The notes below the pieces were generated by a model. It saw only the letters and a list, made by a program, of their open reading frames with translations, was not told the origin of the DNA and searched no databases. The position numbers were made by a program, and so were the translations under genes. Below are positions 22,523 through 56,300 of a DNA stretch of 64,000 bases, in pieces (within the stretch, counting starts at the first letter, position 1; the number at the start of each line of letters is the position of its first letter). The stretch spans positions 1 to 64,000 of the forward strand of contig NW_019218339.1 of NCBI RefSeq assembly GCF_002571385.2, given 5' to 3'. This DNA is from Stylophora pistillata. Its lineage: Eukaryota.

Positions 22523-22526
22523 GTAG

Positions 22527-22781
22527 TTCCCCCAGGTATTGATCATGCTCCATCAGCTTATCAAGTTGTAGAAGGAAATGAGCTGATTCTTTTCTGTAAT
22601 GCCACTGGAAATCCAAAGCCTGACATTACTTGGACTAAAAAAGGAAAAAGCTGTGAACTGCCCACATCAGAGACTCTTACATTAACAAAGCTGACACGAG
22701 AAGAAGATCAATCTATTTACAAATGTGAGGCAAAAAATTATTTAGGATTGACACAAGTCTTTACTAAAATTACTTTCCTTT
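22527..22781 (+). CDS. Gene 1 intact Ig exon (type D)
   Basis: 255 bp, phase 1-1: [29 protein letters not shown]. Confidence 0.7.
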
Positions 22782-28830: not shown

Positions 28831-31800
28831 ATGGATAACTCCCTGACAGTTTGGACGTTTTTTTCGCTATTTTGTGTGTCAGGTAAGGTGCAATGTAATA
28901 CCTCTTAAAACCTATTTTAATAGCCAAGTATCTTTTTTTTCCTTTTACTCACTTTTTAATCCCTCTCATTTTTCGAAGAATCTCTGTCTTGGACCATCAA
29001 ACAGCCCCGCAGTGTATACAGAGGATCACCCATCACACTAGAATGGACAATATCACTAACAACAGAAGAAAGGAAGAGAGCGGATCGCTTTTCTTTGATT
29101 CTCTTGGAACGTGAGAAGTTTCTTTACAGCAATCAGTGGCAGATCATGGCTGTTAAACAGTATTACAATGGTATTTATCAGGAAATCGACAATGAGGACA
29201 CTTTTGATGTGATTCCTGGAAAGGACATGGCACTCAAATTGAACAATGTCACGGACACAGATGCTTCCCGGTTTCGTTGCACATTTCTTAGCTCATTTGC
29301 ATCTCCGAAGAGTATCATAGAGGTGGAAATAGAAGGCGAGTCTTTGTCGTCTGTGGAAGTCTCTACTTTTAGATGTAATAGGTAATCTTTCAGGTGTACC
29401 CCTGACCTACTGCCTNNNNNNNATCATTATCTAACAGGACAGCGGGGTACTCTTCACACTTTTAATTGGGGATGTTATTTCTTTCTTGTTTTAGATTCTC
29501 CGATATACGTACGTCTTATGGACGGAACTACTCCCAATAGAGGCCGAGTAGAAGTGTATCGTAATGGATTTTGGGGCACCATCTGTAGAGACAGTTGGGA
29601 TATTCCGGATGCTTCAGTTGTTTGTCGAATGTTGGGTTACGCGGGAGCCTGGAAAGCTGGCTGTTGTACTGATTATCGGGGTGGGACTGGTCCAGTATGG
29701 CTAAGTGACATTTCATGTACAGGACAAGAGAAGTCTTTATTAGAATGTCGTCACAGTGGTTGGGGTGTCAATAACTGTGATCACAAAAAAGATGCAGAGG
29801 TCGTATGTTACAGCTCGCCAACAGTAAAACCATCTCACTTTTTCAGTGGACAAACCATGTCAGCAAGAACACAAAAATCTTTTTTTTCTAGCACAACAGC
29901 AGTTACATCCACATTGGCTCAGTCTATTTCGACACAGGTGCTTCCACCAATACCCTTCAGTCCAACATCAATACAATTCCAAACCCATATTGTTCGAGTT
30001 ACAGAAGCTATAGACGTATCTCCGAGTTCTTCGTCGTTGGCCGTCATGTCCAGCTCTGTTATTTCGTCCACAAACCCCAGTAAGTAGCCCGTGCAGTCGT
30101 TGTTCCAGCTCATTAACAACTGTCGAAATGCAATCACTTTCCAAGGCTTTGACATGAATATAGACGTTAAGTTGTGTTACCCCTTTGTTGTCAGTGTGGA
30201 ACGGCTCTCGATTAGTAAAATAAGTTAGATTCTGTGATCAATCAGGGACTTCCATGTGAGTGTGCTTAGCATAGAGATTAACCCCCAGAAAATGAAGATG
30301 AGAGGATACAAAAGAACGGTTTGAGGCAGACACTCACCACGCAGTTCTATTTTACAGACATGAACCATTAAATGATAAACAAGTCACTGTTTTATGACTT
30401 AATTGTTGAGCTCAACACCGAATACAAGTAGATACGTGTGAATTCGGCATTTTCGATCACAATATGACTTTTTTAAACAGTTGTGTTTATTGAGCTGCTG
30501 AATGGCGGTGGTCACCCAAATCAAGGTCGTGTTTCACTTTACTACAATGGCCAGTGGGGTACAATATGCCAAGATCATTGGGAGTTGAATGATGCCCATG
30601 TGGTGTGTCGTATGCTGGGATACCCAAGAGCTTTTGACTTTACCAACAGGACAGTCTTCGGTAGTGCTAACGATGGACCAATATGGTTAGATGAAGTCAA
30701 CTGCACGGGAAATGAGAGCACCCTCGCAGCTTGTCCACATGCTGGCTGGGGAAAAAGTAACTGTGATCACAGTAAAGATGTGGGGGTGAAATGTGACTTT
30801 AATTACACTGTGGAGGCAAAAGGTACGGCAATAAGCTAATACGATTATCAGATAATATTTGCAAACCGCAAATTCATTAATTCCTAGAAGTCAGCCAGTC
30901 CGTCAAGCAATCGATTTGTGCTTCGTAAGTTTTTGGTACCTGGGTGTTTCGACAAAGTCTTTAATGTCTGAAACTCTCTCTGCAGATGCAAGTTGCTCAT
31001 TTGACACTTGGTATTGCGGTTGGGAGAATGGACCAGGCAGCCAGGGATTTACATGGACCAGGAAGTTTGGTTCGACGATATCAAGTGAAACCGGACCATC
31101 CCAGGATCACACCTCTGGGAATGGTAAGGGATGCTTCATACCGAGGAATGTGAACGAGTTATCAACATGATGATACAATTAAAAATTTTTCGTGTGTATT
31201 TTAGTGTTAGAAAAAGCTTAGTTTTTGGTTCCACGTTCACGATAAGACGATTTACATTCTTTTATTCGTCGACGGAACTTAAAATCAACCGTTTTTTGGT
31301 TTGTTTGTTTCAGTATTGAATGTGCATGTAACTGTCGGAATCACTGATTGTTGTTTTTTTCTCTCCGCTAGTATCAGTAACTCCACCAACATTATTAATT
31401 GCCTAAGGGATGTCACGCAAAGCTTTTGCGTTACATCCAGGAATGACCATGACCACCCTTATTTCATTGTAGTTCTTTCCCCACTGCAGGTTTTTACTTT
31501 TACATTGAGGCATCTGGACGAAGCATGGGTGAAATTGCTTCACTCGTGTCTCCATATATACGAAGTGATGGAAACACCACGTGTATGGTATTCTTTTATC
31601 ATATGTATGGACAGTCCATTGGTACGCTCACAGTCAAGGCTGGAGATCAAGTTTTGTGGCAGTTGTCAGGCAACCAGGGAAATGCTTGGTACAGGGCAAC
31701 TGTACCCCTTAATTTCAATGCCACTTACAGGGTACGGCAGCTGATCTTTTCACGAACATACGTCACCTGCATGAAGTAAAGTATTTCATGACAAACGATT

Positions 31801-34800
31801 TTTTTCACGTATTTTACTTTATCCTTGTTTGGTTCAGGTGATGTTTGAAGGTGCTGTTGGTAGCACTGCACGCAGTGATATCGCTATCGACGATGTTGAG
31901 TTCCAGGGAAATACAGAGTGCGAGAAGACGGCTGAAACGTTAGGTTAGTGGACCGTTAAACTTCGAAATTATGCCATGGGACTAAAATAATTGTTGGTGT
32001 TACCAGGTACGATGTAAATGTAAAAGAGTTTCAGGTGTAACTAGACTCAGTGTTTTCATTAGTTTCCGCCAAGTGCTTCTGTCCTTGCCTTCTCGCTTAG
32101 AGGCACTGTGTTTGAGTGAAGAAAGCCTTGTTCCCTCAATCCAGAGGTTCGGGCTCAAGAATCGCTGTGATCGCCAGATGGAATTATTTATGGTCAGTTC
32201 AAATCTTCCACCACGCTTTTTGATGGCAGCTTCTTCCTGCCATTTGGTGATTTCGATCGTGTCACGCTTGAATACTATTATTAAATTTTAGTCATTTGAC
32301 GGTTTGTTTAATCAGTGGGCCACAATGAAAACTACCGGGCCACTGGTAATTACAAAGTATTTTTATCAGTAATGGTGTGCAGGAAGGTCAATTTGATGGC
32401 ACCGCACTTGTTAGACCCTTGGAAATTACCTTTCTTGATTAAAACTCACGGTCTCAAATATAATTTGGAAAGCTCGAACGAACGATTTTCAAAGATTTAG
32501 TTCCTCTTTGTTGGCATACATTCGCTCATATTCTCATTCTCTTTCCTTGTTTTCAGTCCCACCAAAAATCGTGTGGATTTCCCCAAATCGAACAGCTGAA
32601 CTTGGCAGTGAGGTTACGTTAGTATGTACCGTAATTGGTCTCCCCACACCACGTGTGATATGGAAGAAAAATAGAAGAGTTCTTTCGGGGAGTCAGGTGA
32701 CTGGTAACGTCACTCTACTGAATATCTCTCAGTCCGATATTGGCAGTTATGAGTGCTGGGCAGCTAATGATGTGGGCACTGACACCAGAGCTACAGTACT
32801 CGACGTTTTAGGTTGGTGGATTAATTTTTTTCTTGACTATTCCGGAGTGAATACATTGAAATTGCGTACATTTGATGAATCAGAAGTAGCATTGTTAAAA
32901 CTCAGACGAGTTGTGAACTTAGCAAATTTGAGGGCTCATTAATTTTGAATACCCAGAAAAGCAAACGTACTCTCCTCTACTTCTACAGAACGTTTTGAGT
33001 GTCTGGGAATTGCAAATAGTTTGCAGTAACGGGGCTGTTCTCTTTTTTGGAATGACCTATGCAAAGTGCTGAAACTGTGAGTGTTATGGATGAGAAGCGC
33101 AATCCAGACCAGATTTTCTCTAGCTTAGTTATTGTTCCCCAATCTAAAGATGGACATTCTATGAAATTAACTTCTCTTGTTTCATTCTCTGAAGGATCTC
33201 CGATGAAAATAGTAATCACCAGCAACGCGTCTTCGAATGTGGCAATTTAGGGGGACTCTGTTGCCATACGGTGCTGGTCATATGGCTACCCTGGTCCACT
33301 CTGTCACATATATCGCGAGGGTAATTTACTAGGCGCAAATAGAGGTGTTTATGTTATTGAAAACTTCACTACTTTGGATCAAGGAGTCTACATTTGCAAC
33401 TGCTCTAATGTCGCTGGTGCAGCGCAGGCAAACTTTTCCCTCGCTCTTTATAGTAAGTGGCTTGATGATTAGATTCGTTTTCTTAGTACAAACAAGTGGG
33501 AGAATAGTTGACTCCAAATGGCTTATAGTTGTTTTTTAGTATATCTAGTGTGTTTACTCGAGTCCTAAAATGTCATCCGTAGTAACATTGTTAACCAATG
33601 ATAATGATAATAATCAACTTATTTACGGAAGATAACCGTCAAAAGTATTTCAACTGATGAGCAAGTGGTCCTCTATCTTAAAGCCAAACTGCAGCATGCA
33701 ATGTGGAACTGGAAGGGAAAGGTCCAAGACTTACTTTTTACCTTACAGAGTCCCCAGCTATCCACACCATTTATCCAGCCTATCAACTTGTGAACGAAAC
33801 TGATGCATTTGAATTTTTCTGTAATGCGACGGGAAATCCAACCCCGACAATAACATGGTGGAAAATTGGCGACACTAGCAAAGTATATTCCACAGAACCA
33901 ACACTGGCAATACAAAATGCTTACAAATCAGACTTTGGCAGCTACCGATGTACCGCAACAAGTATTCGCGGTGAAAACGTGTCAGCTGTTGCGCGGGTGG
34001 AGATGGATAACTGTGAGTAGAATTTCTGATAATACGATAGTCACAAGATAGAACATGTTCTGGCTTAGACGGAGGCGAAAATTCATCGTGAGCCTTACGT
34101 CAGTTAGATTTGGGCGTTAACATCGATTTATACAGGTAAACAATATGATAAAGAAAGAAATGATAGTGTATCACCAAAGTAAATAAGACGGCAGAGTTTA
34201 AGTTGGGCGCAAATTATCAGTGCCTATAACGGTGTTTGTCAGTTAATGCACTCTCCCCCTCCTTCCACCCCTCCCCAATGATTTACTCCTCCTCCCAACC
34301 CCCCTCCCGAATGATTCACTTTGTATCAGAACAGTATCTGATATGCTTAAATATCAGTAAGGAAAAGCATCAACCTTGATGGCGACTGATAATGTTTTTT
34401 TTTCGAAGAAGTCTTTCAAAGCCACTGCGTGATCTGATTTTCAAGATTTGTGTTTTTACATGTTTGTAGTTTCGCCGACAGTCGACTACATTTGCTGTAA
34501 CGTGACTATTTTGGAAAAAGAAAGAAGAAATGTTACAATGTACTGTAATGCCACAGGAAGACCAGCGGCTCAGCTGTCCTGGATAAGAGTTGTAGATGGT
34601 AAAACATTGGTCACTGGGAATACTTTAGTAATCACAGCTGCTGGTCGGTCGCATCGTGGTGAATACAGATGCGTCAGTGATAATGGAGTGCGGAATCCTG
34701 TGTCCAAGTCGGCATACGTGAACGTGCTTTGTAAGTTCAGAAAGTTTCTTGTTGAAGTCACCTAGGCAATTATTGTTCGAGGTGTCTTTCTCGTGAGTCA

Positions 34801-37800
34801 AGCTTCACTTCAAATGCTCAAAGACCACAGCTTAAAAAGGAGAATATATGTTTTCCACAGCATCATCGCCTAAACTCCCACGGGACTTTTTTCGCATTTT
34901 GCAGTTACCAAGAATGTTGAGTCCTTTTTTCACATTTTGTCCATTCTATTTAAAGACGCAGCAAATGCATCATCTGAGAACGAGAATCGTTTATTTCATA
35001 CTAACGAAATGGTGGGAAACTACACGACGATTAGTATTGTCCGTACTTGAAACTTGACCAAGTTCTTTCAAATTAAGTCAGTTAATGTTAATTCAGTAAG
35101 TTAAGACAAGCTCTGGACATATTCTCGTATTTATATTCACCACACACCAAAAAGCGTCTGTTAGAGGAGGTGTACTGTTTGCCTAAAATCAAAATCTCAA
35201 TTTCTCTCTTTTCCTAAAGATAATCCAATAACCACAAGATTAACAACCGATAAATTAAATGCAGTGGTGCTAGGAAATGGTCGCATTGCAATGACTTGCA
35301 TAACTGATGCCAACCCACCGCCAAGTCAATACAAGTTTTATCGTAATGGTGTCTACTTAAGGACAAGTCTTACAAGAGTGCATGTTATTCACAAGGCCAG
35401 ATATTTTGACGCAGGAACCTATATGTGTGTACCAATCAACAGGCTTGGCTTTGGTTCAAACGGCTCTGTCCAGGTTTCGGTGATTGGTAAGTAAGACCAG
35501 CTCTTGCACTTTCAGTCGCCATAACTTTAGGCGACTCGAAGCGACTCAACTGATTTAAGTACAATATTTCCGAAATTTCACGCGACGTGAGGCGACTTAA
35601 GTAGGCCTCAAGCAACAAGCACAGCATCAAAAAGTCATCCACCTGGCGTTGTGTCCATGGTATTTTGATTTGTGCAGAAATACAGAGAAACTAGTCCTAA
35701 GCTTGTGGGTCATTGACCTGCTTTGTCGTCAAGTCTTCAAAGAAATAAAGAGAACTGCGATCTAAATTCCTCCAATGTTTGTCAACAGGTGCTTTTTCTA
35801 TCATGCACTTCCCACGGAACATGACTGTCAACGAAAGTGCACGTGTGTCATTTTTTTGTAATGCTACTTCTTATGCCCCATATGGGAAATTTGCTCCTCA
35901 AATCTCTTGGAGTAAGCTAAGAGACAAAAGCAAAGTATTCCCAGCAGGTGAACAGCTCGTTATGAGGAATGTTAGTAGATACGATGGAGGTACATACATC
36001 TGCACAGCTAGGAACGGAGTTGGGCTTCCTGATACTAAAACGGCGGTGCTAAGTGTGTTACGTGAGTAAAAACATTTGACATTATGAAAAAATGATTGTC
36101 TTTAGTAACCAACCAATTTGATTGAGTTGCTGAACCGGTTGTTACTATATTCTGCAGATAAACCATATGACACTAAGCTTGGGGCATCAGTTCCAGACAA
36201 TATTGCAGTATTAAACTCATCAGTGGTATTAACTTGTAGAGCAAAGGCCAATCCACCGGTTACATCCTATAACATTTATCACAATGGCATCTTAGTGTCC
36301 AATACATCCAGTGGTATTCACAACATCACGCACGCTCTGGCTGAAGATAATGGATCATACGTCTGTATACCGCACAACGAGTTTGGTGAAGGCGAAAAGG
36401 CAGCTTTGAACGTGTCTTTTGTGGGTATGTTAAGACTCTCAGTTATGAATCCGTCCTTTATGTCCAAAGAGTTTTGAATGACCAGTATTACTTGAGAACA
36501 TGTTAACTAAACTGAACAATCCGGTTATAAAAAACGAGCTATCTGTAAATTCCATAGAAATTCGTTATTATCTTGCTTTTGGCTAACGCACTTAGTTGCA
36601 CAAAAGAACTCAGTTAGAAGCATTATTGTCTCCTGTAATATAATTGGTTAATTTTGTCGTAGTAGCCCAGTGATAGTAATAGCCTCACATACTGAGCGTC
36701 TGATAGTTTTCAAACATAGGAACTGTCTTCGAGAATAATATTGATTGAGAAGAGTTATAATTAAGCTACCACTTAGACATACGCATGATGCACGATCCTC
36801 GCAGTAGATAGCGCTATTTATGCAATAGCGAAAATCAGACCTGAAAAAAATCAGGCCTGTACGGAACTCGAACCACGGACCTCTGCGATACTAGTGCAGC
36901 GCTCTACCAACAGAGCTAACAAGCCAACTGGGAGCAGGCCGTTAAGTTGATTCGTAATAAACCCGTGAAAGTGATAAATGAGAAACAATGAATATATGAA
37001 GTTCATATATTTTGAACTGCGGTATTAGATACGTATGATGCACGATTCTCGCAGTACATAGCGCTGTACAGGCCTGATTTTTTTCAGGTCTGATTTTCGC
37101 TATTGCATGGTGCTATCTACTGCGAGGATCGTGCATCATACGTATCTAATACCGCAGTTCAAAATATATGAACTTCAAATATTCATTGTATCTCACTTAG
37201 ACATAGTGCATGCCCAGAAAGATAATGCAAGTTTGGCTGTTTTTCCAAACAGGACCTTGTGGCGTTAAACGCGTGCATCATACCTGGTCGCCGCAGATTG
37301 TGGCAGGAGCTAAAGCTAAACCAGGGGAGTGGCCATGGCAGGTCCAGCTCGGATACTTTGACAAAACCGATAGCATCCCTCATCTTTGTGGTGGCTCCAT
37401 CTTGGATCACTACTGGATTGTCACGGCTGCACACTGTGTAAAAAGTGAATTTGGTAAAAAAACCCCCGCCAACTTCAATGTCACTGCTGGTAAGCCCTTT
37501 TTAGTTGGTACGAGTGTTTGTTATCCATACGGTAGAACACAGCCACTTGACCTCCCCAAAATTACAACCTCTTGCTACTAATAATCGAAAGCTTTGTCTT
37601 TTCATTAAGCCCGGGACACAGTTATATCGGAATGTTCTGACAATTATAGTATAGCTTCTAGTAGTCTAGTAATGTTACCTATTTACGATAGTAGCGTCAG
37701 TTTTGTTAACGTGATTGACCAAGACGCTTATTGCAACGAAATTTTATGGCTCAAGCATAGTCATTTTAAACTAAAGTGTGCAAGATTACATTCTCAAAGG

Positions 37801-38529
37801 ATTGAAATTTTGAGCTGGGATGGGGGTGGGGTGGGTGGGTGGTTGGGATGAGTAAGGTAGTGGAGAAGGAGTCTCAACATGCCTTCTCCCTTTGGGAAAT
37901 TTCCAGCGGGACTCTAGTATACATGCTCATAGGTATGACCACTGACCACTGGCCTGTTCCTTTCATCGTCAGGTGAACTCCACAGAGGGGTCAGTGAAGG
38001 AAGAGAGCAAACTGTTCCTATAGAAAAGATAATTGTGCACGAGAATTTCGACCAAAAAACTTTACAAAATGATATCGCTTTGATGAAGCTCCGGACACCA
38101 ATCTTCTTTGATGCGCATGTGTCGCCAATATGCCTTCCAAACTTTGATTTTGACGACGGTACCAAGTGTTACGTCACCGGCTGGGGTCGTACTGGACCTC
38201 TTAGTTCGACGCCAAACATTCTTCAAGAGACTTTAATTCCTCTTGTAGCTCACAGAGTTTGTCAACTGTATTACAAACAGAAAAGAGTTAATAATGTAAC
38301 GTCAGATATGCGCTGTGCTGGAACCCTGGGTCAGAGTCGAGGTACATGTAAAGGTGACAGTGGTGGACCGCTGGCCTGTGAGAGAGACGGCCGTTGGTAT
38401 TTGATGGGAGTTACAAGTTGGGCAAATGAGGGCTGTATGCACAGCGGTGACCCGGGAGTCTTTTCAGATGTCTTGTACTTTAGGAGCTGGATTGAAGAAG
38501 TCATGAAGAACAATACAAAGGCAACATAG
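28831..38529 (+). CDS. Gene 3: secreted mosaic serine protease SP-IgV-SRCR-(S/T linker)-SRCR-MAM-Ig x7-S1 protease (~1486 codons, one in-frame TAG)
   Basis: Exons 28831-28882, 28979-29335 (GC donor), 29495-30079, 30481-30822, 30986-31123, 31490-31731, 31838-31943, 32557-32811, 33195-33452 (TAG at 33248-33250), 33749-34012, 34470-34730, 35220-35486, 35789-36061, 36158-36424, 37253-37489, 37973-38529. Phases are consistent (sum 4461 nt). No transmembrane segment seen. Confidence 0.88.
28979..29335 (+). CDS. Gene 3 exon 2: atypical Ig V-set domain (Trp at B-strand Cys position)
   Basis: [27 protein letters not shown]. Confidence 0.8.
29495..30822 (+). CDS. Gene 3 exons 3-4: two SRCR domains separated by a Ser/Thr/Pro-rich linker
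   Basis: [42 protein letters not shown] and [34 protein letters not shown]. Confidence 0.92.
30986..31943 (+). CDS. Gene 3 exons 5-7: MAM domain
   Basis: [56 protein letters not shown]. Confidence 0.92.
32557..36424 (+). CDS. Gene 3 exons 8-14: seven Ig (I/C2-set) domains, one per phase-1 exon
   Basis: Each exon is 255-273 bp with C..(W/Y/H)..DxGxYxC-type motifs. Confidence 0.88.
36779..37199. mobile_element. tRNA-derived SINE-type repeats in inverted arrangement (intron 14 of gene 3)
   Basis: Minus-strand tRNA-like head at ~36860-36930 (TAGCTCTGTTGGTAGAGCG..GGTTCGAG). ~36779-36862 and ~36975-37060 are inverted relative to ~37066-37199. Confidence 0.7.
37253..38529 (+). CDS. Gene 3 exons 15-16: chymotrypsin-fold (S1A) protease domain, intact triad
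   Basis: CG..WSPQ|[29 protein letters not shown]. Confidence 0.95.
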
Positions 38530-39886
38530 GAGAGCGGCTTGATTAAAAACGTTGGATTCAATTTTCAGAAAAAACACGAGCAGTTGAACGGAGAGATAAA
38601 TGAGTGGTATGGTTTAAGAAAATTGTCACAGAATTTCAATTATTTTTGGAACTCTTTCCACTAGTTTGAACAAAGCTGTGCGAGCATTACACGTGTCAGA
38701 AGGCTAACTCTTTTGGGGTAAAAAATCGAATAACGAAGTTGTTGTGATGATCCTCGAAACATTTTAATCTACAGTTGAACTTGAACCAAGTTTTAGCACC
38801 AGCTTATATCTAGGATGCATGAATTTTTACATAGATATATTTAAGCACCGTGTGTTTGTAAATTTACTTTTATGAATTTCTCCGGAAAGAAATAATCAAC
38901 ATTAAGAAACAAATTATTAATGATAAAAAAAAATTTATCTTGACGTAAACAATTTTGTAAAGAAATCCAATAACACTGTTTCAACAACGAAGTGTGGGAT
39001 TAATTATTGATTATAAGTCACTGTTTGGAAAGGTCACTTTTTTTATGGATCCTCTCGGCCGTAGAGCTCAGAGATTGAATAAGCCCTTATCCAAACAGCC
39101 ATATGTTGGGTTAGGTTGAGTGTTAAGAGGTTGNNNNNNNNNNNNNNNNNNNNNCTTTTTCTTCAGTTACATTTGGGCTGCATGCAATTTTTTTCTTCCA
39201 ACAAGAGCTTGCAGGAAATTTTCAAAATTACCCACCCCCCCTCAAGAGTTAAGTAGTCGGCCCCTTAGGGATAGGGTTAGGATTCCACAAAAGCACTACA
39301 CGCAGTAAAACGTGCTTAACATTTTTTTTTATTTTTTTTTAGTGTGGCTGTTTGTAATCTATACGTTAAATATTCAACAGCAACGACGTCAGTTGATACA
39401 TTCCAGGAGGCTTCGGTTAGAATTTTGGTTTAGTACTCCAGTTACAAAAGACTGATAAATGATATCCTTCTAGGCAGCCGCTATGTTTGGTGTCTTTTAT
39501 TAGAGACTATAATTTTATGCACATCAGACCATATGTAAATTTGCTGAACTCCTCTCGCTCAACGTGAAGTTTTAACACCAGTTCTGAATATATGTTTCCC
39601 TTTAAGGTTTTAATCCTCCAAGCTGGCAATTCATTACTTGTAAAGGATGCACATCGTTGTAAAGTGATTATTTCGTTGTTTTTCCTATCGGAAGTTGTAT
39701 AAACTGCCTGTCGTGTCACTACTATGAATTTTCGGTTAAATAATTGTTTTATTAAAGAAAACGTCCCCAATATATTAGACAAATCTTCTCGAATTTATTT
39801 TGTAAGAAGAAACCGGATGTTACAATGTACAGATATTAGATTATGGTATATTGGCTCATATAACGTAATGGCTAAGCTAATAAAAC

Positions 39887-39925
<39 letters not shown>

Positions 39926-40257
39926 TTGTTGTTATCTTCCTGACCAACGTCGCTTTTTTATCATCTCCTATCCAGCGCGAGCACGTGGGATGATTTGTTA
40001 TTATACATGCATTGTCTCTTTTAATAGCAGTCAGGGAAATATGCTGCATCCACGACAAATGATGGCAGTAAATGCTCTTCGGTAAAGTAGGTAACAGGTT
40101 TTCAGATAAAATGAAGCTGAGGAACTCTCTAAAAAAAGTTAGTACGTCCAACAGGTTTGGTCTTTTCCGGTGCCGGAAACAAGGGATATTTTAGTTTAGT
40201 TCAAACACGATTCCTAGGAAGACCATGTAAGATGATACGATTTCGTGTATAAATAAA

Positions 40258-40260
40258 GAT

Positions 40261-40296
<36 letters not shown>

Positions 40297-40331
40297 CGAT
40301 GATGATGACGATGATGATGACGATGATGATG
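40258..40331. repeat. (GAT)n microsatellite
   Basis: About 24 GAT/GAC units. Confidence 0.95.
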
Positions 40332-40473
40332 AGAAAGCAAGCATCCTTCTAACGGGGGTGCACCTTTATGGGAGTAAGGTTATGGCCACAATGGATCTCT
40401 ACAAAATTGAATCTGCTAGGTATCTTTCAGAAAGCTGGGGAGAAACTACAACTTCTTTAAGGAAAAAAAAGTA

Positions 40474-41329
40474 CCTTATTATCACTTATTTTCGCGCGGC
40501 TTTAATTTCGCGTATTTGGAATAAAAATATTTCGCGCGACTTAAAATTCGCGATTTTGACGAATCACTGTTTTTCAAGGTAATTAAATTTCGCGAATCAA
40601 GTAACTGGTGCTCGTTTTTTAAACTTTCATTTCAGTATTTTATTTAACCATAACGGAATAGAAACCTCAAACGCAACAAACAACTGGCTGAAATGTTCAA
40701 CAATGTCTGCAACTTCGTAACATCTTTTTAAAGGGCTGATACAAGCAAGATGAGTCAGATGATGAGGAATAAGTGTAAATGTTTCCTTTCAAGTTAGAAT
40801 TTGCACTCGATTTCCGGGTTGGTACACGCGTAAGCGATAAACACCAAACCAATATAGGATAAAGGTAAAAAAACCTAGCGATAGGTTTGGCTTTGAATCA
40901 CAACTTTGAGTTAACATAATCACAAAATAAATTGTTGCTTAGCAACGTTCGCAGGTCTTGACTACTTATCGAGGATTACGGTCTAACTTTTCTTCTATCT
41001 AGAAACGGTCTTGATTACACGAGGTCTTATCCTAAACTGAAACGCTAGCAATGAACTAATCACGGAGGCGTTTATCAAACCACAAAATATTTCACAGCTT
41101 CTCTCGGAAGCGGCAACATTTAGCTTTAATTAACGGAAGCGGTTACAATTAGGGCATGCGTCGAACTACTCGTATGTAAACTCCTAGCAGACGGAAAACT
41201 TAAATAAAGGATTTTATAAAGGTCTCTAAATTTCGCGTCTTTAATTTTCGCGGGACTTTATTTCGCGAATTTTTTTTTAATTACGAAAATCGCGAAAATT
41301 AAGTCTCTCGAAAATAAGTGATAATAAGG
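40474..41329. mobile_element. TA-flanked MITE (Tc1/mariner-type), 21-bp perfect TIR, subterminal TTCGCG repeats
   Basis: TA|CCTTATTATCACTTATTTTCG ... CGAAAATAAGTGATAATAAGG|TA. Confidence 0.8.
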
Positions 41330-42175
41330 TAAAAGGAACCAATCAGGTAACACTCAAGAATATCATGTTTTGAACCTTTTCTTTTTATGATAAATTTCCT
41401 TTCTTTAAGCCGGTAAACCCTTACAAATAGAATGCTACCCAATATTCTCGTTTGCATGAAGAAAGTAGAACTGAATAAACTGTATAAATAAATAAATACA
41501 TGGATGTTTTCTATATACACTTTATCGTCAGGCCTGTGGATCCTGAACATCCCCTTGAAATGGACGGATGAAATATTTTCATGATTAGATGAAAACTTAG
41601 TAAACAACTTTATCAGAACTCTATGAGAGAATTACTTTATCAATATACATTTTCACATCCACTTTGCTTCATTATAGAATTAAAAAAAATACAGGTAGCT
41701 ATATAAATATTTTCGTCCAATTTGCGGATTTGTATCTGTGTAAGAAATAATAATATTAAAAAAAAAAAACTGCGTCAACAAACCGGTTAGCGTTAAAGAA
41801 ACATGTTTCGGCTTTAAATTACATTAATCTGCTTCTTTTATACTACGCTAAACACCAATAAACAGACATGATTTTATCAGACACATTTGTTAGTTATTAC
41901 ATTTCATTTATGTTTTTCTGTTCAACACATCCTCGTTTGGGTACTCTTGAAGGAGAGGGGTAAAATTCGGGAAGCGGTGCCCCAGTGACGGGATTTTTTC
42001 AAGGCAACATGGCTTATTTGTGATCCACTATGTTACACTTTAGGTTGTGAAGTAAGTGCCCCACAAAACGTCTTTGTTAATACACGACAACATTGTTCCA
42101 AAGTCGCAAACTGCTAACAATTCATTAATATTTTAGGCATTTTACCCACTGTCGCAAAATAAAATCTGTTGCGTC

Positions 42176-43081: not shown

Positions 43082-43302
43082 CTGTTTCAAAAAAGAGAAA
43101 ATGATACAATGACCTAAAAACAATCGCACACTGAGGAAACTTTGTGATACTCTGCAATCCACTTAGTGGTACCATTTTCTTTCCTTTAAAGCCAAATTGT
43201 TACGTTGAATAATTCTGAATAATTATTTTCTCATCACAATTTGCCATCCGCCGCGCCTATCGAAAAATACTATCAACACTCAAAAAGTCGCAAATAACAC
43301 AC

Positions 43303-46300: not shown

Positions 46301-46705
46301 ATTTACAAAAGAAAAAGCTAGAATTCCCTAAAAGACCGGTATAATTACATAAAGGCATTTTTGATCACTACAAAAAAATTACTAATGAAAAAAAGGAGAA
46401 GAAAAAAACACTCAAAAACGTTTGGTGGGGTTGAGAGCCTAACCATTTACCTTCAACTTTGAGCTCCATTGTTCTTGATTCAGTAGCCAAATGATTGCTT
46501 ACTGAGCACTCATAAAATCCGCCATCTGCTTGAGAGATGTTTAGTAAAGTGATGTTACCAGTCACCTGACTCTCATTGAGAACCTTACCATTTTTCCTCC
46601 ACACAATGGTAGGTTGAGGGCTACCAATCGCGGTACAAACTAGTGTTACGTTGCTTCCAAAGTAGGCTGTTTGATTCGATGAAATAGATATGATTCTTGC
46701 TGGAA
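43303..46705 (-). CDS. Gene 4: seven Ig exons
   Basis: Lengths 255, 258, 264, 261, 267, 273 and 267 bp equal those of gene 3 exons 8-14. Confidence 0.88.
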
Positions 46706-47118
46706 CTAAAAGTTAAAGAGATTTGTTCATGTTGTCGGTTTCAAACATAGTGGCTTTCGCAAATTCATAGGAGCACCATCGTCGGTCAAGCGTGTAGCTA
46801 AAACACTGATCAAATGTGCGAAAACTATGAATACGAGATTAATCTCGCTACTTGATAGAAAGGACGTCAATTAATACTGTAAACACCTCGGTCACAGGGT
46901 TCTACTAAATTACCATAACAGATACAATAAGGTGCACCGCTTTTGGTTGTGTAATATTCTCTTGATGTTACTAAAAATGAGAAAAAGAAGGATTTGCAAA
47001 CTAACAAAACAAGTTTTCTTCTATCAATTATTTGGAATGGCACCACTTCGTCTCATGCGACCAAGTTAAAACTCTGTGTAACCTGTTCAGTCACAATTTT
47101 ACTGGCAGAGGTTATTAC

Positions 47119-48791
47119 CTAACGTTTCGGCTGTCTTTTCGCACTCTGTATTTTCCTGGAACTCGACATCGTCCATAGCGATATCACTAAATGCAGTACT
47201 ACCAACTACACCTTCAAACATCACCTTCAAATAAGTAAGAATAATGAAGACATCAAAAATCCAATTATTTGAATCTATCACTTGTAAATTTTCCAAAACA
47301 TAAAATTATACCAGTAAGTAAATAGGGTCTGTACACGATGTGATCGTGTGGTCTAATCGGCCGGACGACTGTAGTCCTGAAAAGGACTGCTGTTCGTAAA
47401 CATTTCAACAACCTGTAGCAGAACTGGTCATCATACTGAACTGAAGGACTATTGCGAGTAGAGAAATGTAAGTCGAGTCCGTTTCAAACCGATCGGCCAG
47501 TTTGCCATAAAGTTGTTGACACTGCGGCTTACATAGATCTTGATTGGTCTGTTTCGATCCGTCGTTCCGTTCGGTTTGACTGTTGTGTAAATATCGCGAA
47601 TAGGTTGTTTGATTGCTGCCAGTAGTTGTTGAGATCTGTTGAGTAGAGTCATTGCTTAGTTACTGAGCCAGCTTTCCAGAGTCTATCGTCGAAAGTACTT
47701 CAGTCATGCTGAAGGTTAAGCTTTGTACAGACTCCAAGTTAATAGATTGGTTTGTAAGTCGATAATGTTCAGCAATGTGACTGTCGACGTGGCCTTTTCT
47801 CGTCGCTCGTTGTGTTAACCCAGTCTTTTGTTCAGTTTCCTGCCGATCAGTCCGATAGAGGAGGCTCTGCAGTCTAGGCAGATCTTGAAAACTGCTCCTT
47901 ATGAAGTATTGAGTAATCGGTCTGTTAGCGACGTGGACATTGTAAGAATGTAGAATCCGCGAGATAGTTTTAAACATGAGACTTCACGATCGAGTGTTTC
48001 TCTCGTATTCAAACTATTAACTGTCTGGTCTCCATACACCTACAGCTGCATGTAGTGCTTTCATAACAATTACAAAGGAATAACTTCGCTTGCGGCAATA
48101 CATTACTTGTTTGTTTTAATTTTGTGGATCACTGAAAAAGTAAAACTATCTTACCCTATAGGTGTCGTTAAAATAAAGAGGCAATGTCGCTTTGTGCCAA
48201 TCGTTTCCCTGGTTGCCTGACAGCTCCCACAAAACTTGATCCTCAACCACCACTCTGAGTGTATGAATAGACTGCCCATACATATGATAATAGAACACCA
48301 TACACGTTGTGTTTCCATTGCCAGCTATGTTTGGAGACTCTATTGTCGAAACGTCACCGACGGTTTGTCCGGAGGCCTCCACGTACACGTAAAATCCTGC
48401 AATAAAAGCGTGTAGGGTATTGATCTATCTATCTGCAGGTAATGCAGTGGACTATATGGCTAAATAAATTTGACCCTCTATTTAAAAGTATACCCTAGAA
48501 TAGCGACACCTTAAGTTTAAAACGATTTTAAAAATGGTGCAGCACTTTTTGGAAAACTCGCTGAAAATTTTTTTAGAAAATGACTACTCGTAACGGATTA
48601 CGTTTCTCAGCATAAAACATCGCAGGAGAAGAGAAAACACCAACCGTTCTTACCAAATCCAGAGGTGCGATCTTGAGAGGGCCCTGTGTTGTCTGTTATA
48701 GTTGGACCAAATTTTCTTGTCCATGCGGGACCCGACCTGTCCGCTGAAGTTTCCCAGCCACAATACCAGATGTCAAAATTACAACTTGCAT
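47119..48791 (-). CDS. Gene 4: MAM domain (3 exons)
   Basis: CNFDIWYCGW..YVEASG..CMVFYYHMYG..SDIAMDDV; exons of 138, 242 and 106 bp as in gene 3. Confidence 0.9.
47335..47990 (-). mobile_element. Degenerate Penelope-like fragment (same family as 2909-3998), intronic in gene 4
   Basis: ISRILHSYNVHVANRPI..RATRKGHVDSHIAEHYRLTNQSI matches the 3071 ORF. A pLTR-like GTAGTCCTGAAAAGGACTG is at ~47370. Confidence 0.75.
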
Positions 48792-49210
48792 CTGAAAAAG
48801 CAATTCCGTTGCTTACAAACGTTGATGATATGAGCTAAACGGAAAAGTAGTACTAACTCTTGTGTAAACTGAGTGCAATAGTGTTCTCATCCTAAACGGG
48901 TATCTTAGGACGTCATACTGCACGATTTAATAAAGGACAGATGAAAAGACCATATTTCCTGTTTTATGTTCGAGATTTTAATCAAATTTCAGTTGATGGG
49001 GAATAGAATTAGAGGCTAAATGGGTTGGTCAGAAGATTTTATTCCTCGTGTCTATCAGTTCAAACATATAGCGAACATTTTTCTTTTTATAGCTTGTCAA
49101 AAAGGCTTATTTTTACCAGAGAAAGATGCTTCTTCGGTTCTTTACATACCACTGTCACACCCAACAAAATTTAGAAGTTATTGTAGCGATTACTAACATG
49201 ACAATCTTAC

Positions 49211-52200
49211 CCTTTGCATTCACAGTGTAATCATAAGCACATTCCACTCCCACATCTTTAGTGTGATCACAGTTACTGTTTCCCCAGCCAGCATGTGGAC
49301 AAGCTGCAAGCGTGCTCTCATTTCCCGTGCAGTTGACATCATCGAGCCATATTGGCCCATCAATAGCACTCCCAAAGATTGTACTGTTGAAGAAGCCAAA
49401 AGCTTCCGGGTAACCCAGCATTCGACACACCACGTGGGCATCATTCAAATCCCAATGATCTTGACATATTGTACCCCACTGGCCATTGTAGAAAAGTGAA
49501 ACACGGCCTTCATTTGGGAAAAATCCATCTAACAGCTCAAGCTCTATCACTGATAATAAATAGTAACAAATCATTGTTTAGGGGAGAGTGTTATTTCTTT
49601 GGCCAACTTAATGCTTTGTCTTGCATTGTCCAAAGTCCAGGAGGCTGGCCTTTCTATTATAGAAAGTTTGAAGAATCAAATGACACTTGCTAAAGTAGGG
49701 AAATTGTAAAATTTTAGAATCTTAGAAAATAGTATTGTACAGCTCCACGTGCAGCTGCTTCATAAAATTTAGCGAAAATATCAGAAATCATACTATGAAT
49801 TGTGAAATAAATCGGGCTCATGAACATTTATTTTTCCACCTAAAAAAGGCGTGGTTGTATGAAGTTATGAGCAATATTTCCGATGTAACAATATTTGGAT
49901 ATAAAAATGCACGATATTCCATAGCACTTTTCCAACTGAAGAATATGTGTTAATTTTTACCGAAGGCGTTATTCATGCGTTCCAATGGCAACGCAGTTAA
50001 CATGATCGTATTTCTCGTTCCCCTTCTCTGAAAAGTGACGTTCCCTTTTTACTCTAAAGCTTACAGTAAATGCACGAACATACACGAGCCAAACCCTTCC
50101 ATGTACCTGGATATTTCTCTTTGCACACAACACCGGCGTCGTCATCATGGCTGCAGTTATGTGACCCCCACCCTCTGAATGAACACAAAGCTACCGAAGA
50201 CTCTTTCCCTGTACACCATAAATCATCAAGTAAAATTTTCTGGCTAGTATGTCCGGCGCCAAATCTTCCTTTCACTTCAGCAGAGACAGCCCCAGGAAAG
50301 CCCGTCATTCTACAAATGACGTCTGCATCTTGAATATCAAATAGATCACTGCACACAGTTCCCCATTCACCATTGTAGTTGACCTCCACACGACCTTCTC
50401 TATCACTTGACCCATTCACTAATCGTGCATAAACAGCTGTAGTGATAAATTTAAAAATAAATGTCACTGAAAGAGTAAAGTTTCTTCTTAAACTCTTAAT
50501 ACCGGTCGTGGTCACCCTTCCTATGTTTCCAAAGAATTGAGATACATAAGATAAATTCTTCATAAATCTATCCCAATGTTGCGAAAGGAAAAGCATGAAA
50601 ACTCAAAGAGGTCCTACATGATCATGCATTACTTTCATTTTCTGCGAGTGACCCTTTAATAGAGGTTTCACCGTACAACAGATGGCAAAGCAACAACCCA
50701 AGCATTGGACAGAGCGTACATACCAGGTGGTCCAACTGGTTTGTTAGTATCATTCACTACTGTTGAATCTGCCAATCCGTCTGGCGGTGGTGAATTACCG
50801 CAAAATACTCCGGCGTCTTCCTCATGATCACAATTATGAACCAACCAACCATTGTGACCACATTCAATGAGGGTGCTCTCAACTCCGAGGCAATTAACAT
50901 TGTCGAGCCAAATGGGCCCTGTTCCGTAAAATTCATTTGCGTTCTGTTGTTTCATAAACACACCGAATGAGAATGCTTGCCAAGCATACTTATAGCCAAG
51001 CATTCGACAAACTACGGTGGCATCCTTGATATCCCAGTTGTCATCGCAGACTGTGCCCCAGATTCCATCGTGGTAGATCTCTACCCGGCCATGCGTTTCA
51101 TCTCCATCTCTTAGTCTCACAATTGGAGCTATTAAATCAAAACAAAGTAGGTTTTAACCCACAGTAGCTCAGTCGAAAAAATTAATAAATTTTAGCAAGA
51201 CTGGACAGTGTATTTTCCTTGCAGAACTGCACATTAACAGCATTAAGGAATTACCTTTAATTTTCTCCTTGCAAATTACACCAGCATCTTCGCTATGATT
51301 ACAATTACTTGATCCCCATCTTCTGAATGAACAGGTAGCTAATGAAGTCTCCTGTCCAGTGCACCACAAGTCATCGAGCAAAATCTTCTGATTGGAATTT
51401 CCAGGACCGAATCTTCCTCCTATCTCTGCAGATACCGCTCCAGAGAAGCCCATCATTCTACATACCACTTCTGCATCTCGAATGTCAAAGTCATGGTTGC
51501 ACACAGTTCCCCATTCTCCCTTGTAGAAAACCTCAACCCTACCTTACCGATGACTTGATCCGTTGACTAATCGAACTTGAACAGCTTTGGTGAGGAAAAA
51601 AGATAAAAAACAATAAATTCAAACTTATAAAGAATTTGAAAGATACGATAAAAAATGATGAAAAATGATGAAAAACCTAAAACAGACTTTTTCTGAGGTG
51701 GTACTACACTGAGTTTCCGAATAACAAAAAAGGAAGTTACAAGTTACATGCGAAATAGAAAGAAATCTGAGTCCTATTACGAGAAATCGAACTTCTGACC
51801 TTCACTCTAATTCACGAAGGTTAGCCATATGGAAAAATGTTATGTCTAATCGACTTAAGACAATCATATAAAATCTTTCCTTATGTTTTTCAGGGATAAG
51901 TAAGCACAATTATGGTACTTACAAGGTGGTCCAATAGGTTTGTGATTATCAAGAACCACTGTTGATTCAGGAATATCCGCCTCCCTTGATGTATTAGCAC
52001 ACCAAACTCCTGCATCTTCCAGGTGATCGCAATTATGAACCAACCAGCCATTATGGCCACACTCGTTTAGAGAACTCTCGTTTCCGAAACAGTTAACATC
52101 ATCGAGCCAAATGGGTCCTGTACCATAAAGATCCAGGTCGTCTGTGGTTATTTCTACAGCAAATGAGATGGCAGTCCAAGCGTATTTGAAGCCCAGCATT

Positions 52201-53370
52201 CGACAAACTACAGCAGTATCGTTAATATCCCAATTATCATCGCATACTGTACCCCAAGTACCATTGTAATAGATCTCTACCCGTCCGTAACCAGGAGAGT
52301 CGCCATCTCTCAAGCGCACTATCGGAGCTGTTGAATAAATAAATAAATAAATAAATAAATAATGATTTAACAATGGACATCCACTGGGTGGCTATTCTTG
52401 TCCACTGTTCCAGATCGAATTGGAATTTAGAATGTTGGTTTTTGCGGAGGGAGGAAAACCGGAGGACCCGGAGAAAAACCCTCGGAGCAAGGACGAGAAC
52501 CAACAACAAACTCAACCCACATAAGACGCCAGGTCCGGGAATCGAACCCGGGCCACAGTGGTGGGAGGCGAGTGCTCTCACCACTGCGCCATCCCTGCGC
52601 CATCCCTGCTCCCCTGAATTGGATGGAAAGAACGCATTCTTAATATGATTCAATCCTGCAGTCATTTTACTTCTCTCATAAAAGAAATTCAGTATTTTTA
52701 TAGAAATAAAAGGGCACTTTTCTCCTCTCTTACTAAGCAACCAGTGCGTGATGCTCGACAATGAAAAGGAGTCCGATAGAATCACACGTACACGGCTCAA
52801 ATGCATGCATGGGGAAAACTAGAAGGTTTGTTTAAAAAATAAATACTGAGGAAAGAGAAAAATGTAGTGCTGACATACCGGGTGGAGAGGTTGGAGTGGT
52901 CGAGCTCTGCATCACAGTCAGTGAAGGTGAACTTGGAGATACCACTGAAGGAACGACTATTTCATAAGAGCTACCTGGTAACATTTTCACTTGAGATGCA
53001 GGGGAAGTAGAAATTCGTAAGGGTCTCTTTGTGGGTTTCTCTGTTGCTGGACTGTGACAAATAACTTCAGCATCTTGGGTATGATCGCAGTCATGGACAC
53101 CCCACCCGCTATGTTTACATTCGGATAAAGTGTTCTCTTGACCCGTACAAGATAGATCACTCAACCAAATCGGATCACGGCCCCCTGATTGTTTGGTGCA
53201 GCAACCAGCTGTCCAAGCCCCAGGGAATCCCAACATCCGACAAACAACTGATGCGTCTGGCATATCCCAGCCATTCTTACAGATAGTTCCCCAACGTCCA
53301 TTTCGATATACTTCTACTCTTCCCCTATTAGGAGAGGCTCCACCCGTAAGGCGAACTTTTACAGGAACCC
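49211..53370 (-). CDS. Gene 4: six SRCR exons
   Basis: Each exon has GRV(E/S)..WGT(V/I)C..C(R)M(L/M/T)G..LDD/LSD/LDN..C..DA/V motifs. Confidence 0.9.
52333..52615 (-). mobile_element. tRNA-derived SINE with (TTTA)n tail
   Basis: Minus strand TGGCGCAGTGGTGAGAGCAC..GGTTCGATTCCC, body TGTGGGTTGAGTTTGTTGTTGGTTCTCG..CTCCGGTTTTCCTCCC, tail TATTTATTTATT. Confidence 0.85.
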
Positions 53371-56300
53371 CTAAAACAAAAGAGAGAACGACAACGTGAG
53401 AGTGAGTTTATCCGACTTACCACTTTAACCCAAACCAACCAAACGTTTAGCTTAATGCTAACTGTTCGCAAGAAAGTTTGCAATGCACAAGTTGCAAGAA
53501 TGGATTTGATGAGCGTTCGAAGACATATAACAACATCATAACATTGCTAGGGACGGCAATGAGAAACGAACAAACAGAAAAACAAGCCAAGTAAGTTGTA
53601 TGATGAAATCAATGTTCCGAAATATATGATACAAGAATAACTAGCATTAAAAAAAATTAAAAGCAAAAAAGGTAAAACGACACATGCATCAAATCCAAGC
53701 TTTGCATGCATGGGTTAAGGTGACAGGGAATTTTCTTGGCGTGTTTCTTCCGCATGGGTGTTGTTAGACAGACATGTACCTTCCATTTCCACCTGAATGA
53801 TACTCTTGGGTGCTGCAAATGAGCTGAGAAATGTGCAGCGAAAGCGAGTGGCATCGGTGTGTGTGACATTTTTTAGTCTGAATGCCATGTCCTTTCCAGG
53901 AATCACTTCAAAAGTGTTCTCACTTCCAACTTTTTGGTGAATTTCACCAGGATACCCTTTCACAGCCATCATCTGCCATTCGTTGCTGTAAAGAAACTTT
54001 TCACGCTCCACTATAATTAAAGAAAAGCGATCTGCATTCGTTTTCTCTTCTGTTGTAAGTGATATTGTCCATTCCAGTGTGGCGGTTGATCCTTTGCGAA
54101 CATTACTAGGTTGCTTGACGTCCCATTCAAGAGAATCTATTGGTTTGAAAATACAAAAAAGAGAGTCAAATATGCCTATAAAATGGCGCCGTAACAGTTA
54201 TACTCGGACATTAATGTACTAATTTTGTTAATTTCGATAATACCAATAAAGATGTGGAATATAACGAAAGAAGACGCCTCTCTTAGAATAGACTGCCAAG
54301 TGCGGTTGTCAAAACGCGGGAAGACGAAGTGATTCAATTTACCTAACTTGAGTGACGCCTCATCGGTGGGCATCAACCCACAAACAACCGGTTACCTGAA
54401 CCCCCATGTAACCAAGCTCCTACTCGTAATTTTTTACTCTTTTATCCGAAGAGAGAGAGAAAAAATTGTTCTCAGGCTAAGAACCAAATAATTGTTCAAC
54501 AATATATTATTTATTCAAAATATATCTCACTAATGTAATCTACAGCTCATTTTTAAATAATCTTAACAACCAGCTGCTATTAAGCAGGAAATGAAACCAG
54601 ACTCGTGGAGAGTGGCGAAAATCGAGGTTAAATCAAGCCTTTTTTTTTCTTTCTCGGCTATCCTGTTGCCTGGACGTAGAGTTTAGCAATATAAATACAG
54701 CGACAAATGTCCAAATTGATGGCATCAACATCATAAGCTGCAGGTGCAATATTAAATTTCTCTAACGTTTTAACATTTTGTGTGCTAAAATGAAGGTCAG
54801 ATAGGATTTCATCTCGGCAAACAATGCAGGAAATTTGCTTTACAAATCCGTGCTACTGGCCCAAAGCTACCATTCAAAATAACTCATAAGCATGATGTAA
54901 ATCCGAATAAAACACGAAACAAACAAATGTAGTCACGTAGAATAAATTTATCACTCCGCATAAATTTATCATTTTCGCATGTCGAATTTTTGTCGGAGTT
55001 ATGAACACGTTTCCTGACACTTTATAAAGCAGCTTATAATTTAGAAATAAGAGGAAAGCGCCACAGATTTCGCGTTATCGTCCCGGGTTTGAATACTAAA
55101 ACGAACGATTCGCAAGAATTGGCAACTTGAACTATAGAGTAGCAAAGAAATAACACGAAAGTTTGTTTTCGATGTTCACATCAGTACTTCACTAAGTTGT
55201 CATTTCATGGAATCATTTTGTCAGATTTACACTTGAAATTACTCCCCATAATCATGAACTTGTCAGCTAAATAAACATCTATAAGTCTGCATGTTTTTCA
55301 CTCAAGCATTATTAACAAGTATGCAAATTATTCCAAAGGTTAATACTTCGACAAGAATCCCTAAAATAAATGAAATAGTTCATCGTAGTTCAGACAGAGA
55401 GGCGGCATCATTCGTGAAAAATTCGGTGCTATCATGTTGCAAGGTTGAAACAATCGTTGCTCAGTACCTTTCAGCGTTATGTGGCGAACAGTTTAGGGAC
55501 GATTGTGAAAACTACGTAAACATTTGCATACGGGTTCGAAAACTTACCTGTAAATGAAATCTGTGACCACAGGAAGAAAACCAGCAGAAGATGAACAACC
55601 ATCGTCACTTTGGAAGAGTTCGATTAAATAATAAAATCGATTTTGAGTAATAGAGATTGACGTGAACAGTTTAACCTTCCTGATGCGAAATAATTCCGTT
55701 TGTAATGTAGATGAGACACTGACGTAGTTATTAAGATATGAACATACACTGAGGAATGTGCACACCTCTTAACACTGAACAAGAGATATGCTAAATCAGT
55801 CGGTAATGATCTATTTTTGTCACGCCAGCTTGTATCCGGCTGATGTCGTAATCCGTCACAGATCCTTCTAGAGTGGGCGAAATTTTCAAGGACATGTTTA
55901 TGTGTCCTTTAACTTTTTGTTATGTATGGTGTGTTTATTCTGTTATGGTCGAAAGAAAAATAAAAGGAAATCATCGATGGGAAAGATATTTTCGAAATCT
56001 ATTGGCTGTCACGCGCCCGTAAACGGCGCAGGTTTTCCCTAAACGGACCGCTTTGGAGCTGATTGATGTGCGCGTCACGTTCGCTTCGGAGTGAACGAAA
56101 ACTTCACCGTCTTGGGGAGAGGGGGGAAGGTTGCTTTGCTTTCAGCTCCTTAGGTTTTACTGTATACTTTTTTCTTCGAAAATACTGATTTTGTTTTATT
56201 TGTTTTTCCTTACCAAATAATGAGTTATACATCATGAGAACGATTTTAAAAAGAATAAAGTTTTTTGTTCGAAATGTCGGTTCGATACTATATGTCAGTC

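Follow-up and report, generated by a model that had tools for sequence, protein, structure and literature searches.

The first 64,000 nucleotides of contig NW_019218339.1 of the coral Stylophora pistillata (hereafter the window; 39% G+C, with short exons, and present in public sequencing runs labelled as coral) carry two convergent paralogous genes, gene 1 at 28831-38529 on the plus strand and gene 2 at 55602-42176 on the minus strand, which we delineated from open reading frames, single-exon Pfam matches and alignment of the paralogues. With a probability of about 80%, we interpret them as two old paralogous genes for secreted multi-domain S1A zymogens of the hexacorallian SRCR-MAM-Ig-trypsin group. 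The domain order runs from a signal peptide through a divergent V-set Ig domain, SRCR domains, one MAM domain and seven Ig domains to a short activation segment with a tether Cys and an S1A protease; the SRCR domains number two in gene 1 and six in gene 2, the first being trailed in each case by a mucin-like linker. Pfam scans, homology searches and folding were performed on single exons or domains rather than on the joined spliced protein, and the 398-Mb assembly, in which the window is the initial 64 kb of one contig, served as the database for copies within the same genome.

Gene 1 begins with an ATG at 28831-28833 and has a coding length of 4461 nt, or 1486 codons. Exon 1 (28831-28882), comprising the start codon and signal peptide and ending in a phase-1 GT donor, has a start common to 15 related open reading frames. 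Exon 2 (28979-29335) encodes the divergent V-set Ig domain of 118 aa, assigned through a structure model and homologues; its donor is GC, the corresponding donor in a related coral is GT, and an alternative GT donor lies at 29374. Downstream, Pfam matches and the paralogue alignment delineated SRCR 1 with eight Cys and a Ser/Thr/Pro-rich mucin-like linker of ~85 aa in exon 3 (29495-30079), SRCR 2 in exon 4 (30481-30822), a MAM domain spread over three exons (30986-31123, 31490-31731 and 31838-31943), and the single-exon domains Ig1-Ig4 (32557-32811, 33195-33452, 33749-34012 and 34470-34730) and Ig5-Ig7 (35220-35486, 35789-36061 and 36158-36424). Both Pfam and RNA define the two protease exons: exon A (37253-37489), with the tether Cys, the activation site WSPQ/IVAG with its predicted cut between Q and I, and His57; and exon B (37973-38529), with Asp102, Gly189, Ser195 in GDSGGP and the stop codon at 38527-38529. 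Intron 2 holds a gap of seven N (29416-29422). The intron between Ig7 and protease exon A contains, in the region 36740-37300, a very high-copy repeat with a summed contig depth of 1e4-3e6 in all four sequencing runs and many rearranged joints in the DNA run.

Gene 2, read on the minus strand from an ATG at 55602-55600, follows the plan of gene 1 over ~1942 codons except for its six SRCR exons. Its start codon and signal peptide lie in exon 1 (55548-55602; MVVHLLLVFFLWSQISFT), and alignment with the paralogue places the V-set-like N-terminal domain, 70% identical to that of gene 1, at 53780-54136. The remaining exons were located by Pfam and the same alignment: SRCR1 with its linker (53370-52879), SRCR2 (52327-51923), SRCR3 (51584-51255), SRCR4 (51128-50724), SRCR5 (50436-50107) and SRCR6 (49549-49211); the three MAM exons (48791-48654, 48396-48155 and 47224-47119); Ig1-Ig4 (46705-46451, 46021-45764, 45613-45350 and 45200-44940); Ig5-Ig7 (44565-44299, 44114-43842 and 43569-43303); and protease exons A (43081-42845) and B (42722-42176, stop at 42178-42176). 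The SRCR2/3 and SRCR4/5 pairs represent a tandem duplication of a two-exon unit. A gene 2 intron also contains a long open frame (52240-52818, minus strand) with the motif GWRRDGAVVRALASHHCGPGSIPGPG, resembling a dispersed repeat.

Thirteen exons have identical lengths in the two genes, exon DNA identity ranges from 70 to 89%, and the introns are unalignable. Introns are in phase 1 throughout both genes, the sole exception being the phase-0 intron between the second and third MAM exons, and these compatible phases fit one gene model. Between the convergent genes lies an assembly gap (39134-39154), 605 nt past the gene 1 stop and 3022 nt short of the gene 2 stop. No reading frame crosses this gap and no coding exon borders it; therefore, frame continuity across it is not an issue. 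The 3′ untranslated region of gene 1 may extend to the gap, because two RNA contigs run ~580-610 nt beyond position 38600. A simple repeat of ~25 consecutive Asp codons (40253-40330, plus strand) occupies part of the same intergenic region.

In the exon-by-exon Pfam scan, eight exons belong to the SRCR family (PF00530; expectation value (E) 1e-30 to 1e-35); the leading SRCR of either gene has eight Cys, the rest six. The middle MAM exon identified the MAM family (PF00629) with E 1.7e-16 and 1.7e-15 in the two genes; scanned singly, the last MAM exon gave a weak match and the first none, and a Nematostella relative matched over the whole domain with E 1.6e-31. Seven exons in each gene matched Ig_3 or I-set. 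No CUB, EGF or Sushi match was obtained from Pfam in any exon of either gene, and the module string of C1r, C1s and the MASPs is thus absent from the scanned exons. Outside the signal peptides, no 19-residue window reached a Kyte-Doolittle mean of 1.6 in an exon-by-exon scan, which a junction-spanning membrane segment would escape. An earlier note on this DNA had proposed two genes with matching exon sizes and a V-type Ig, SRCR, MAM, seven-Ig and S1A string, bearing a signal peptide and no membrane segment; the exon sizes, the modules and the exon-wise membrane scan all bear this out, with the correction that the SRCR number differs between the genes. Its structural reading of the products as secreted mosaic zymogens with a C-terminal S1A protease is likewise supported by the predicted proteins.

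Transcript evidence was obtained from public RNA. Contigs from two runs of different studies, X9 and X17, join 36158-36423, 37252-37488 and 37972-38600 across GT..AG borders, connecting Ig7 to protease exon A and protease exon A to exon B; a further contig of X17 joins Ig3, Ig4 and Ig5 of gene 1. The 3′ half of gene 1 is one transcript. The single transcript that the earlier note had asked for is accordingly confirmed in RNA for this half, where Ig7 is spliced to both protease exons, while for the 5′ half of gene 1 and the whole of gene 2 the evidence consists of phase logic and conservation. The entire Ig5-Ig6 intron is also covered, over 35459-35817, by RNA contigs from two runs, either because the intron is retained or because unspliced RNA accompanies the spliced product.

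The N-terminal domain of neither gene had a Pfam match, and PF07686 did not appear even at E 1. Searching 1.8 billion representative sequences with this domain returned 41 relatives, mostly exon-sized open reading frames from coral contigs. Two of them (P0034 and P0037) are full immunoglobulin superfamily (IgSF) proteins with a Pfam V-set domain over the aligned stretch, and another is a Nematostella protein with the N-terminal domain, MAM and Ig. An AlphaFold2 model built from an alignment of 23 sequences reached a predicted local distance difference test score (pLDDT) of 92.4; its fold is a sandwich of ten strands that include C′ and C″, with a helix in the loop joining strands B and C. Every listed Foldseek match to this model was an antibody-type V domain (template-modelling score 0.64-0.74, E ~1e-6 to 1e-5). 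Given the model, these matches and the homology to Pfam V-set stretches, the N-terminal domain is, as modelled, a V-type Ig domain: it has the V-type beta sandwich with C′ and C″ strands and lacks the canonical B-F disulfide and the C-strand Trp. TLEW stands in place of the B-strand Cys, and a single Cys is left, on the F strand. In the 398-Mb assembly, this V-domain family comprises three copies, all within the window: those of gene 1 and gene 2, and a minus-strand exon at 26186-26542.

At the other end of the proteins, the trypsin domain (PF00089, E 3e-44) retains TAAHC, NDIAL and GDSGGP in both genes, that of gene 2 being split over two frames, so that His57, Asp102 and Ser195 stand in the motif context of S1A enzymes. 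The domain has an unremarkable S1A fold, and its nearest solved structures were crayfish trypsin, plasma kallikrein, enteropeptidase and TMPRSS2 (E 1e-39 to 1e-35). Alignment yielded the activation consensus CG.K[RQ]V..[ST]W[SA]P-Q/IV[AG]G, with the predicted cut between Q and I. In this alignment, the IVAG/IVGG motif and the upstream CG are conserved, and the residue before the motif is never Arg or Lys: among the 20 rows covering the site, it is Gln in 17, Leu in two and Met in one (Nematostella). The next related exon family carries the usual Arg at its activation site. Counting back from Ser195, position 189 is Gly in both genes and the coral orthologues and Ala in Nematostella, rather than Asp. 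In S1A enzymes, Asp189 underlies tryptic specificity, and a trypsin-like convertase needs a basic residue before the scissile bond (P1). With Gly or Ala at 189 and a non-basic residue before Ile, the predicted residues thus imply a protease of non-tryptic specificity, whose active N-terminus a trypsin-like convertase would be unable to generate. A chymotrypsin-C-like preference for Leu, Met and Gln would fit both the activation site and residue 189, which would allow self- or cross-activation. The Cys ahead of the scissile bond, taken with the ten Cys that the two protease exons encode, fits the usual disulfide tether of the protease to the rest of the protein. In such a mechanism, the non-protease part would hold the enzyme at a surface, ligand or partner, the zymogen would be switched on by a non-tryptic protease, possibly itself or its paralogue, and the active protease would remain disulfide-linked to the recognition part.

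Comparison with known mosaic proteases revealed partial likenesses. Vertebrate enteropeptidase, among the nearest solved domains, is likewise a mosaic S1A enzyme with MAM and SRCR and a C-terminal disulfide-tethered protease; it differs in being membrane-anchored, in carrying SEA, LDLa and CUB and no Ig, and in having Asp189 and a basic activation site. Neurotrypsin and the TMPRSS-type enzymes, TMPRSS2 being also among the nearest solved domains, have SRCR directly upstream of an S1A protease; in place of MAM and Ig they carry kringle or LDLa, their activation sites are basic and their pockets tryptic. An analogy of design is suggested with C1r, C1s, the MASPs and horseshoe-crab factor C, in which docking or recognition modules precede a zymogen capable of self-activation upon assembly; these proteins differ in having CUB, EGF, CCP or LCCL/lectin modules, an Arg activation bond and Asp189; the homology is limited to the protease fold.

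We also examined conservation. On a 760-kb contig of another coral (ENA ERZ25067556), one gene combines the N-terminal domain with six SRCR, MAM, seven Ig and a protease; a second gene, convergent with it, has two SRCR, and a V-set/Ig receptor gene lies 2.7 kb from the 5′ end of the latter and is directed away from it. All exons there are intact. Synonymous divergence from this coral is ~0.6-0.7; the pooled ratio of nonsynonymous to synonymous divergence (dN/dS) amounts to 0.24 in gene 1 and 0.20 in gene 2, and between the two paralogues it ranges from 0.12 to 0.48 per exon. These ratios indicate that both genes are under purifying selection. The V domains of both paralogues in the related coral (L008:2253-2606 and L007:6992-7345) are nearer to gene 1 (84% and 86%) than to gene 2, hinting at gene conversion in that coral or faster change of the gene 2 V domain here. 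More distantly, Nematostella contig DS469629.1 carries the N-terminal domain, MAM, Ig and both protease exons in order, and no SRCR exons were found at this locus. The Nematostella protein P0023 and the adjacent 244-aa trypsin share the N-terminal domain family (41% identity) and the order of MAM, Ig and protease, with Met at the activation site and Ala189; the locus differs in its lack of SRCR exons, its split annotation and the inversion of part of the Ig block in that assembly. The 2007-era annotation divides it into a 668-aa protein and the 244-aa trypsin, 214 bp apart, and a search with the 668-aa protein was dominated by multi-MAM proteins. Old Nematostella gene models thereby conceal a V-MAM-Ig-protease architecture.

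The architecture as such has been recorded before. SRCR-MAM-Ig-trypsin proteins of Acropora, Aiptasia and Anthopleura were catalogued by Neubauer et al. in 2016, across five cnidarian resources, as a "potentially novel domain configuration" (PMC5119243). Supplementary file 2 of that study lists A. millepora TRY1, a 1647-aa protein with a signal peptide, four SRCR, MAM, seven Ig and trypsin; the table also includes Aiptasia TRY2 (AIPGENE15640; two SRCR, MAM, six Ig-type domains and trypsin, 1337 aa), A. digitifera TRY1 and A. elegantissima TRY2, and its entries give no function (PMC5119243). Both genes display the domain string of this group, SRCR(n)-MAM-Ig(6-7)-trypsin, a likeness at the level of the domain string. 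The catalogued entries are Pfam strings without the V domain, which Pfam misses, and carry no gene structure, locus or activation site. Our literature search found no later study of SRCR-MAM-Ig-trypsin proteins and no paper mentioning AIPGENE15640, and the passages of the Nematostella "tryptome" paper retrieved by a term search mention no trypsin-Ig combination (PMC6767649), a silence that would fit the split Nematostella gene model. Hence, both genes are members of a catalogued, functionally uncharacterised architecture. The earlier note would have been refuted by a characterised named family of this kind, and that condition applies by half: the domain string is on record, but not as a characterised named family. 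New here are the Pfam-invisible V domain, the gene structure, and the gene pair with its receptor neighbour in a conserved three-gene locus, together with the non-basic activation-site signature with Gly/Ala189, the two-exon tandem SRCR expansion, the allele status of the stops and the modelled V-V pairing.

Regarding function, beside the candidate immune role raised in the earlier note, we considered whether these zymogens might act outside cells in a non-immune capacity, for instance in development, in digestion or in the processing of mucus or matrix, with the SRCR, MAM and Ig domains serving solely as spacers and matrix anchors. This is a serious possibility, somewhat short of even odds. 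Gland cells produce many of the cnidarian trypsins that bear MAM, SRCR and other domains (PMC6767649), polyA RNA from ordinary adult samples contains the genes, and nothing ties them to challenge. However, positive evidence is lacking for a non-immune role as well, and the V domain common to a neighbouring membrane receptor, together with the conserved locus, suggests a recognition context. The literature search found nothing specific linking such proteins to the skeletal matrix or to allorecognition.

Three lesions in the reference open a rival reading in which the duplicate pair is decaying in Stylophora pistillata, gene 2 and the gene 1 reference allele being pseudogenes and only mosaic-protease remnants being left. 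Gene 1 carries an in-frame TAG at 33248-33250 in the Ig2 exon, where gene 2 and the orthologues have Leu. Gene 2 carries an in-frame TAA at 51546-51544 in the SRCR3 exon, at a position occupied by Glu in the internal duplicate of this exon as well as in the orthologue, and its last exon is one base short in a G-run (42513-42510), which places the second half of the trypsin domain, including the catalytic Ser195, in another frame. At position 33249, the RNA contig of X9 has T (TTG, Leu), and one contig of DNA run X1 has T at a depth of 50 out of 105.6, so that both alleles are present. With the Leu codon in X9 RNA and at about half of the X1 DNA depth, the TAG is a real heterozygous allele alongside an intact, expressed one; the stop thus counts for decay as a genuine allele, and the RNA counts against it. 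For gene 2, the overall dN/dS against the orthologue is 0.20, and the SRCR3 exon and the stretch past the frameshift each give 0.12; judging by these ratios, the two lesions of gene 2 must be recent, allelic or base errors. The orthologues are intact, and both nonsense exons are of phase 1-1, with in-frame skipping possible. Taken together, we regard decay of the pair as unlikely. Splicing around the stops was considered and rejected in two cases, an alternative acceptor just after the Ig2 TAG and the GTAAGG made by the SRCR3 TAA as a donor, since either would break the phase.

The third V-family copy, the exon at 26186-26542 on the minus strand, belongs to a neighbouring receptor-type gene directed away from gene 1. 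It retains C..W..C and matches Pfam V-set with E 1.8e-5, and the Montipora orthologue of the gene, named "peroxidasin-like" by NCBI, has a signal peptide, V, Ig, a membrane segment and a tail. Co-folding of the gene 1 V domain with the receptor V domain scored 0.80, compared with 0.07 for the best of three controls, none of which was a V domain; the benchmark mark for pairing was attained by 51 of 78 solved complexes and two of 108 mismatched pairs. The co-fold runs share at least 87% of contacts with a partner pLDDT of at least 90, and in the modelled interface each chain contributes its C, C′ and F-G strands in a manner similar to antibody VH-VL. As modelled, the V domain may bind a second V domain from the same small family. 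The model cannot tell which family member binds, and a homodimer or a gene 1-gene 2 pair would be as likely. A claim that the interface is conserved was dropped, as five of 14 conserved positions fall within it, judged by eye, against about three expected.

A bolder proposal is that the three-gene locus would form one working unit of two zymogens and a membrane receptor that share a private V family, whose three genomic copies span no more than 30 kb. Through V-V pairing, the proteases would dock onto the receptor or onto each other and then cross-activate at a Gln-Ile bond cut only by a non-tryptic protease. We consider this a long shot. If true, it would represent a cnidarian receptor-anchored, self-contained protease trigger, independent of the Arg-specific complement and clotting cascades.

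Several points weigh against our interpretation and its extensions. Gene 2 may be dead in this individual. Read evidence covers Ig3-Ig5 and Ig7-protease of gene 1, and no whole-length transcript was seen. The idea of self-activation rests solely on a non-basic P1 matching a non-acidic residue 189. Finally, the V-V pairing is a model score, and its pass may be memory of antibody-like pairs, because V-domain pairs are very common among solved structures.

Also within the window, the receptor gene seems mis-oriented: its V exon (26680-26186) is on the minus strand, but the Ig exons best matching the Montipora orthologue (12995-25534) lie on the plus strand, in a place that would call for minus-strand exons, with scaffold gaps at 22029-22522 and 25457-25476. 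In the related coral, the receptor V and Ig exons are on one strand, and a contig at the scaffold start here may be inverted. Near-identical Ig exons (21542-21781 and 23670-24047) flank the 494-N gap, which an assembly haplotype duplication or a true tandem repeat may explain. Beyond gene 2, a 211-aa open frame (57505-58137, minus strand) resembles by eye the end of a retrotransposon reverse transcriptase. A further IgSF gene lies at 59150-63042 on the plus strand, with Ig exons at 61608-61997 and 62725-63042; its first large exon has a TLEW motif resembling that of the protease V domains, no Pfam match and no match at E 0.001 in the genome search.

The earlier note had also raised allorecognition, in which these proteins would be polymorphic determinants or effectors resembling the V-domain-led Alr genes of Hydractinia. 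The V-like N-terminal domain without the canonical disulfide and the location in an IgSF gene cluster with related V domains are in its favour. Nevertheless, 15 V-domain variants drawn from public samples match the sequence here with 94-97% identity, about ten positions being variable, and dN/dS of the V exon is 0.13-0.28. Neither the extreme V-domain diversity of Alr-type genes, among these 15 variants, nor a membrane segment that could anchor the protein was detected. Because of this high V-domain identity and the purifying selection on both genes, allorecognition is disfavoured and, in our estimation, very improbable. Least tenable is the view that would assign the protease exons to one gene and the SRCR/MAM/Ig exons to another, following the old Nematostella annotation GCA_000209225.1, which calls an N-domain-MAM-Ig protein apart from the trypsin: the two RNA contigs from different studies contradict it for gene 1, the intron phases match, neither a start codon nor a signal peptide precedes protease exon A, and the Nematostella calls are on a single strand with only their short spacer between them.

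Our findings also indicate that, in at least one case, an in-frame stop in this coral assembly reflects true heterozygosity rather than recoding. More broadly, cnidarians possess mosaic proteases in large numbers, with mostly conjectural roles in symbiosis, immunity and tissue contact, and the gene pair provides a defined, expressed and conserved example. Its testable features are a predicted non-tryptic activation bond, a V domain common to the adjoining receptor and an SRCR number altered by exon duplication. Collectively, the pair offers an entry point to the question of whether corals operate a distinct type of extracellular protease trigger.

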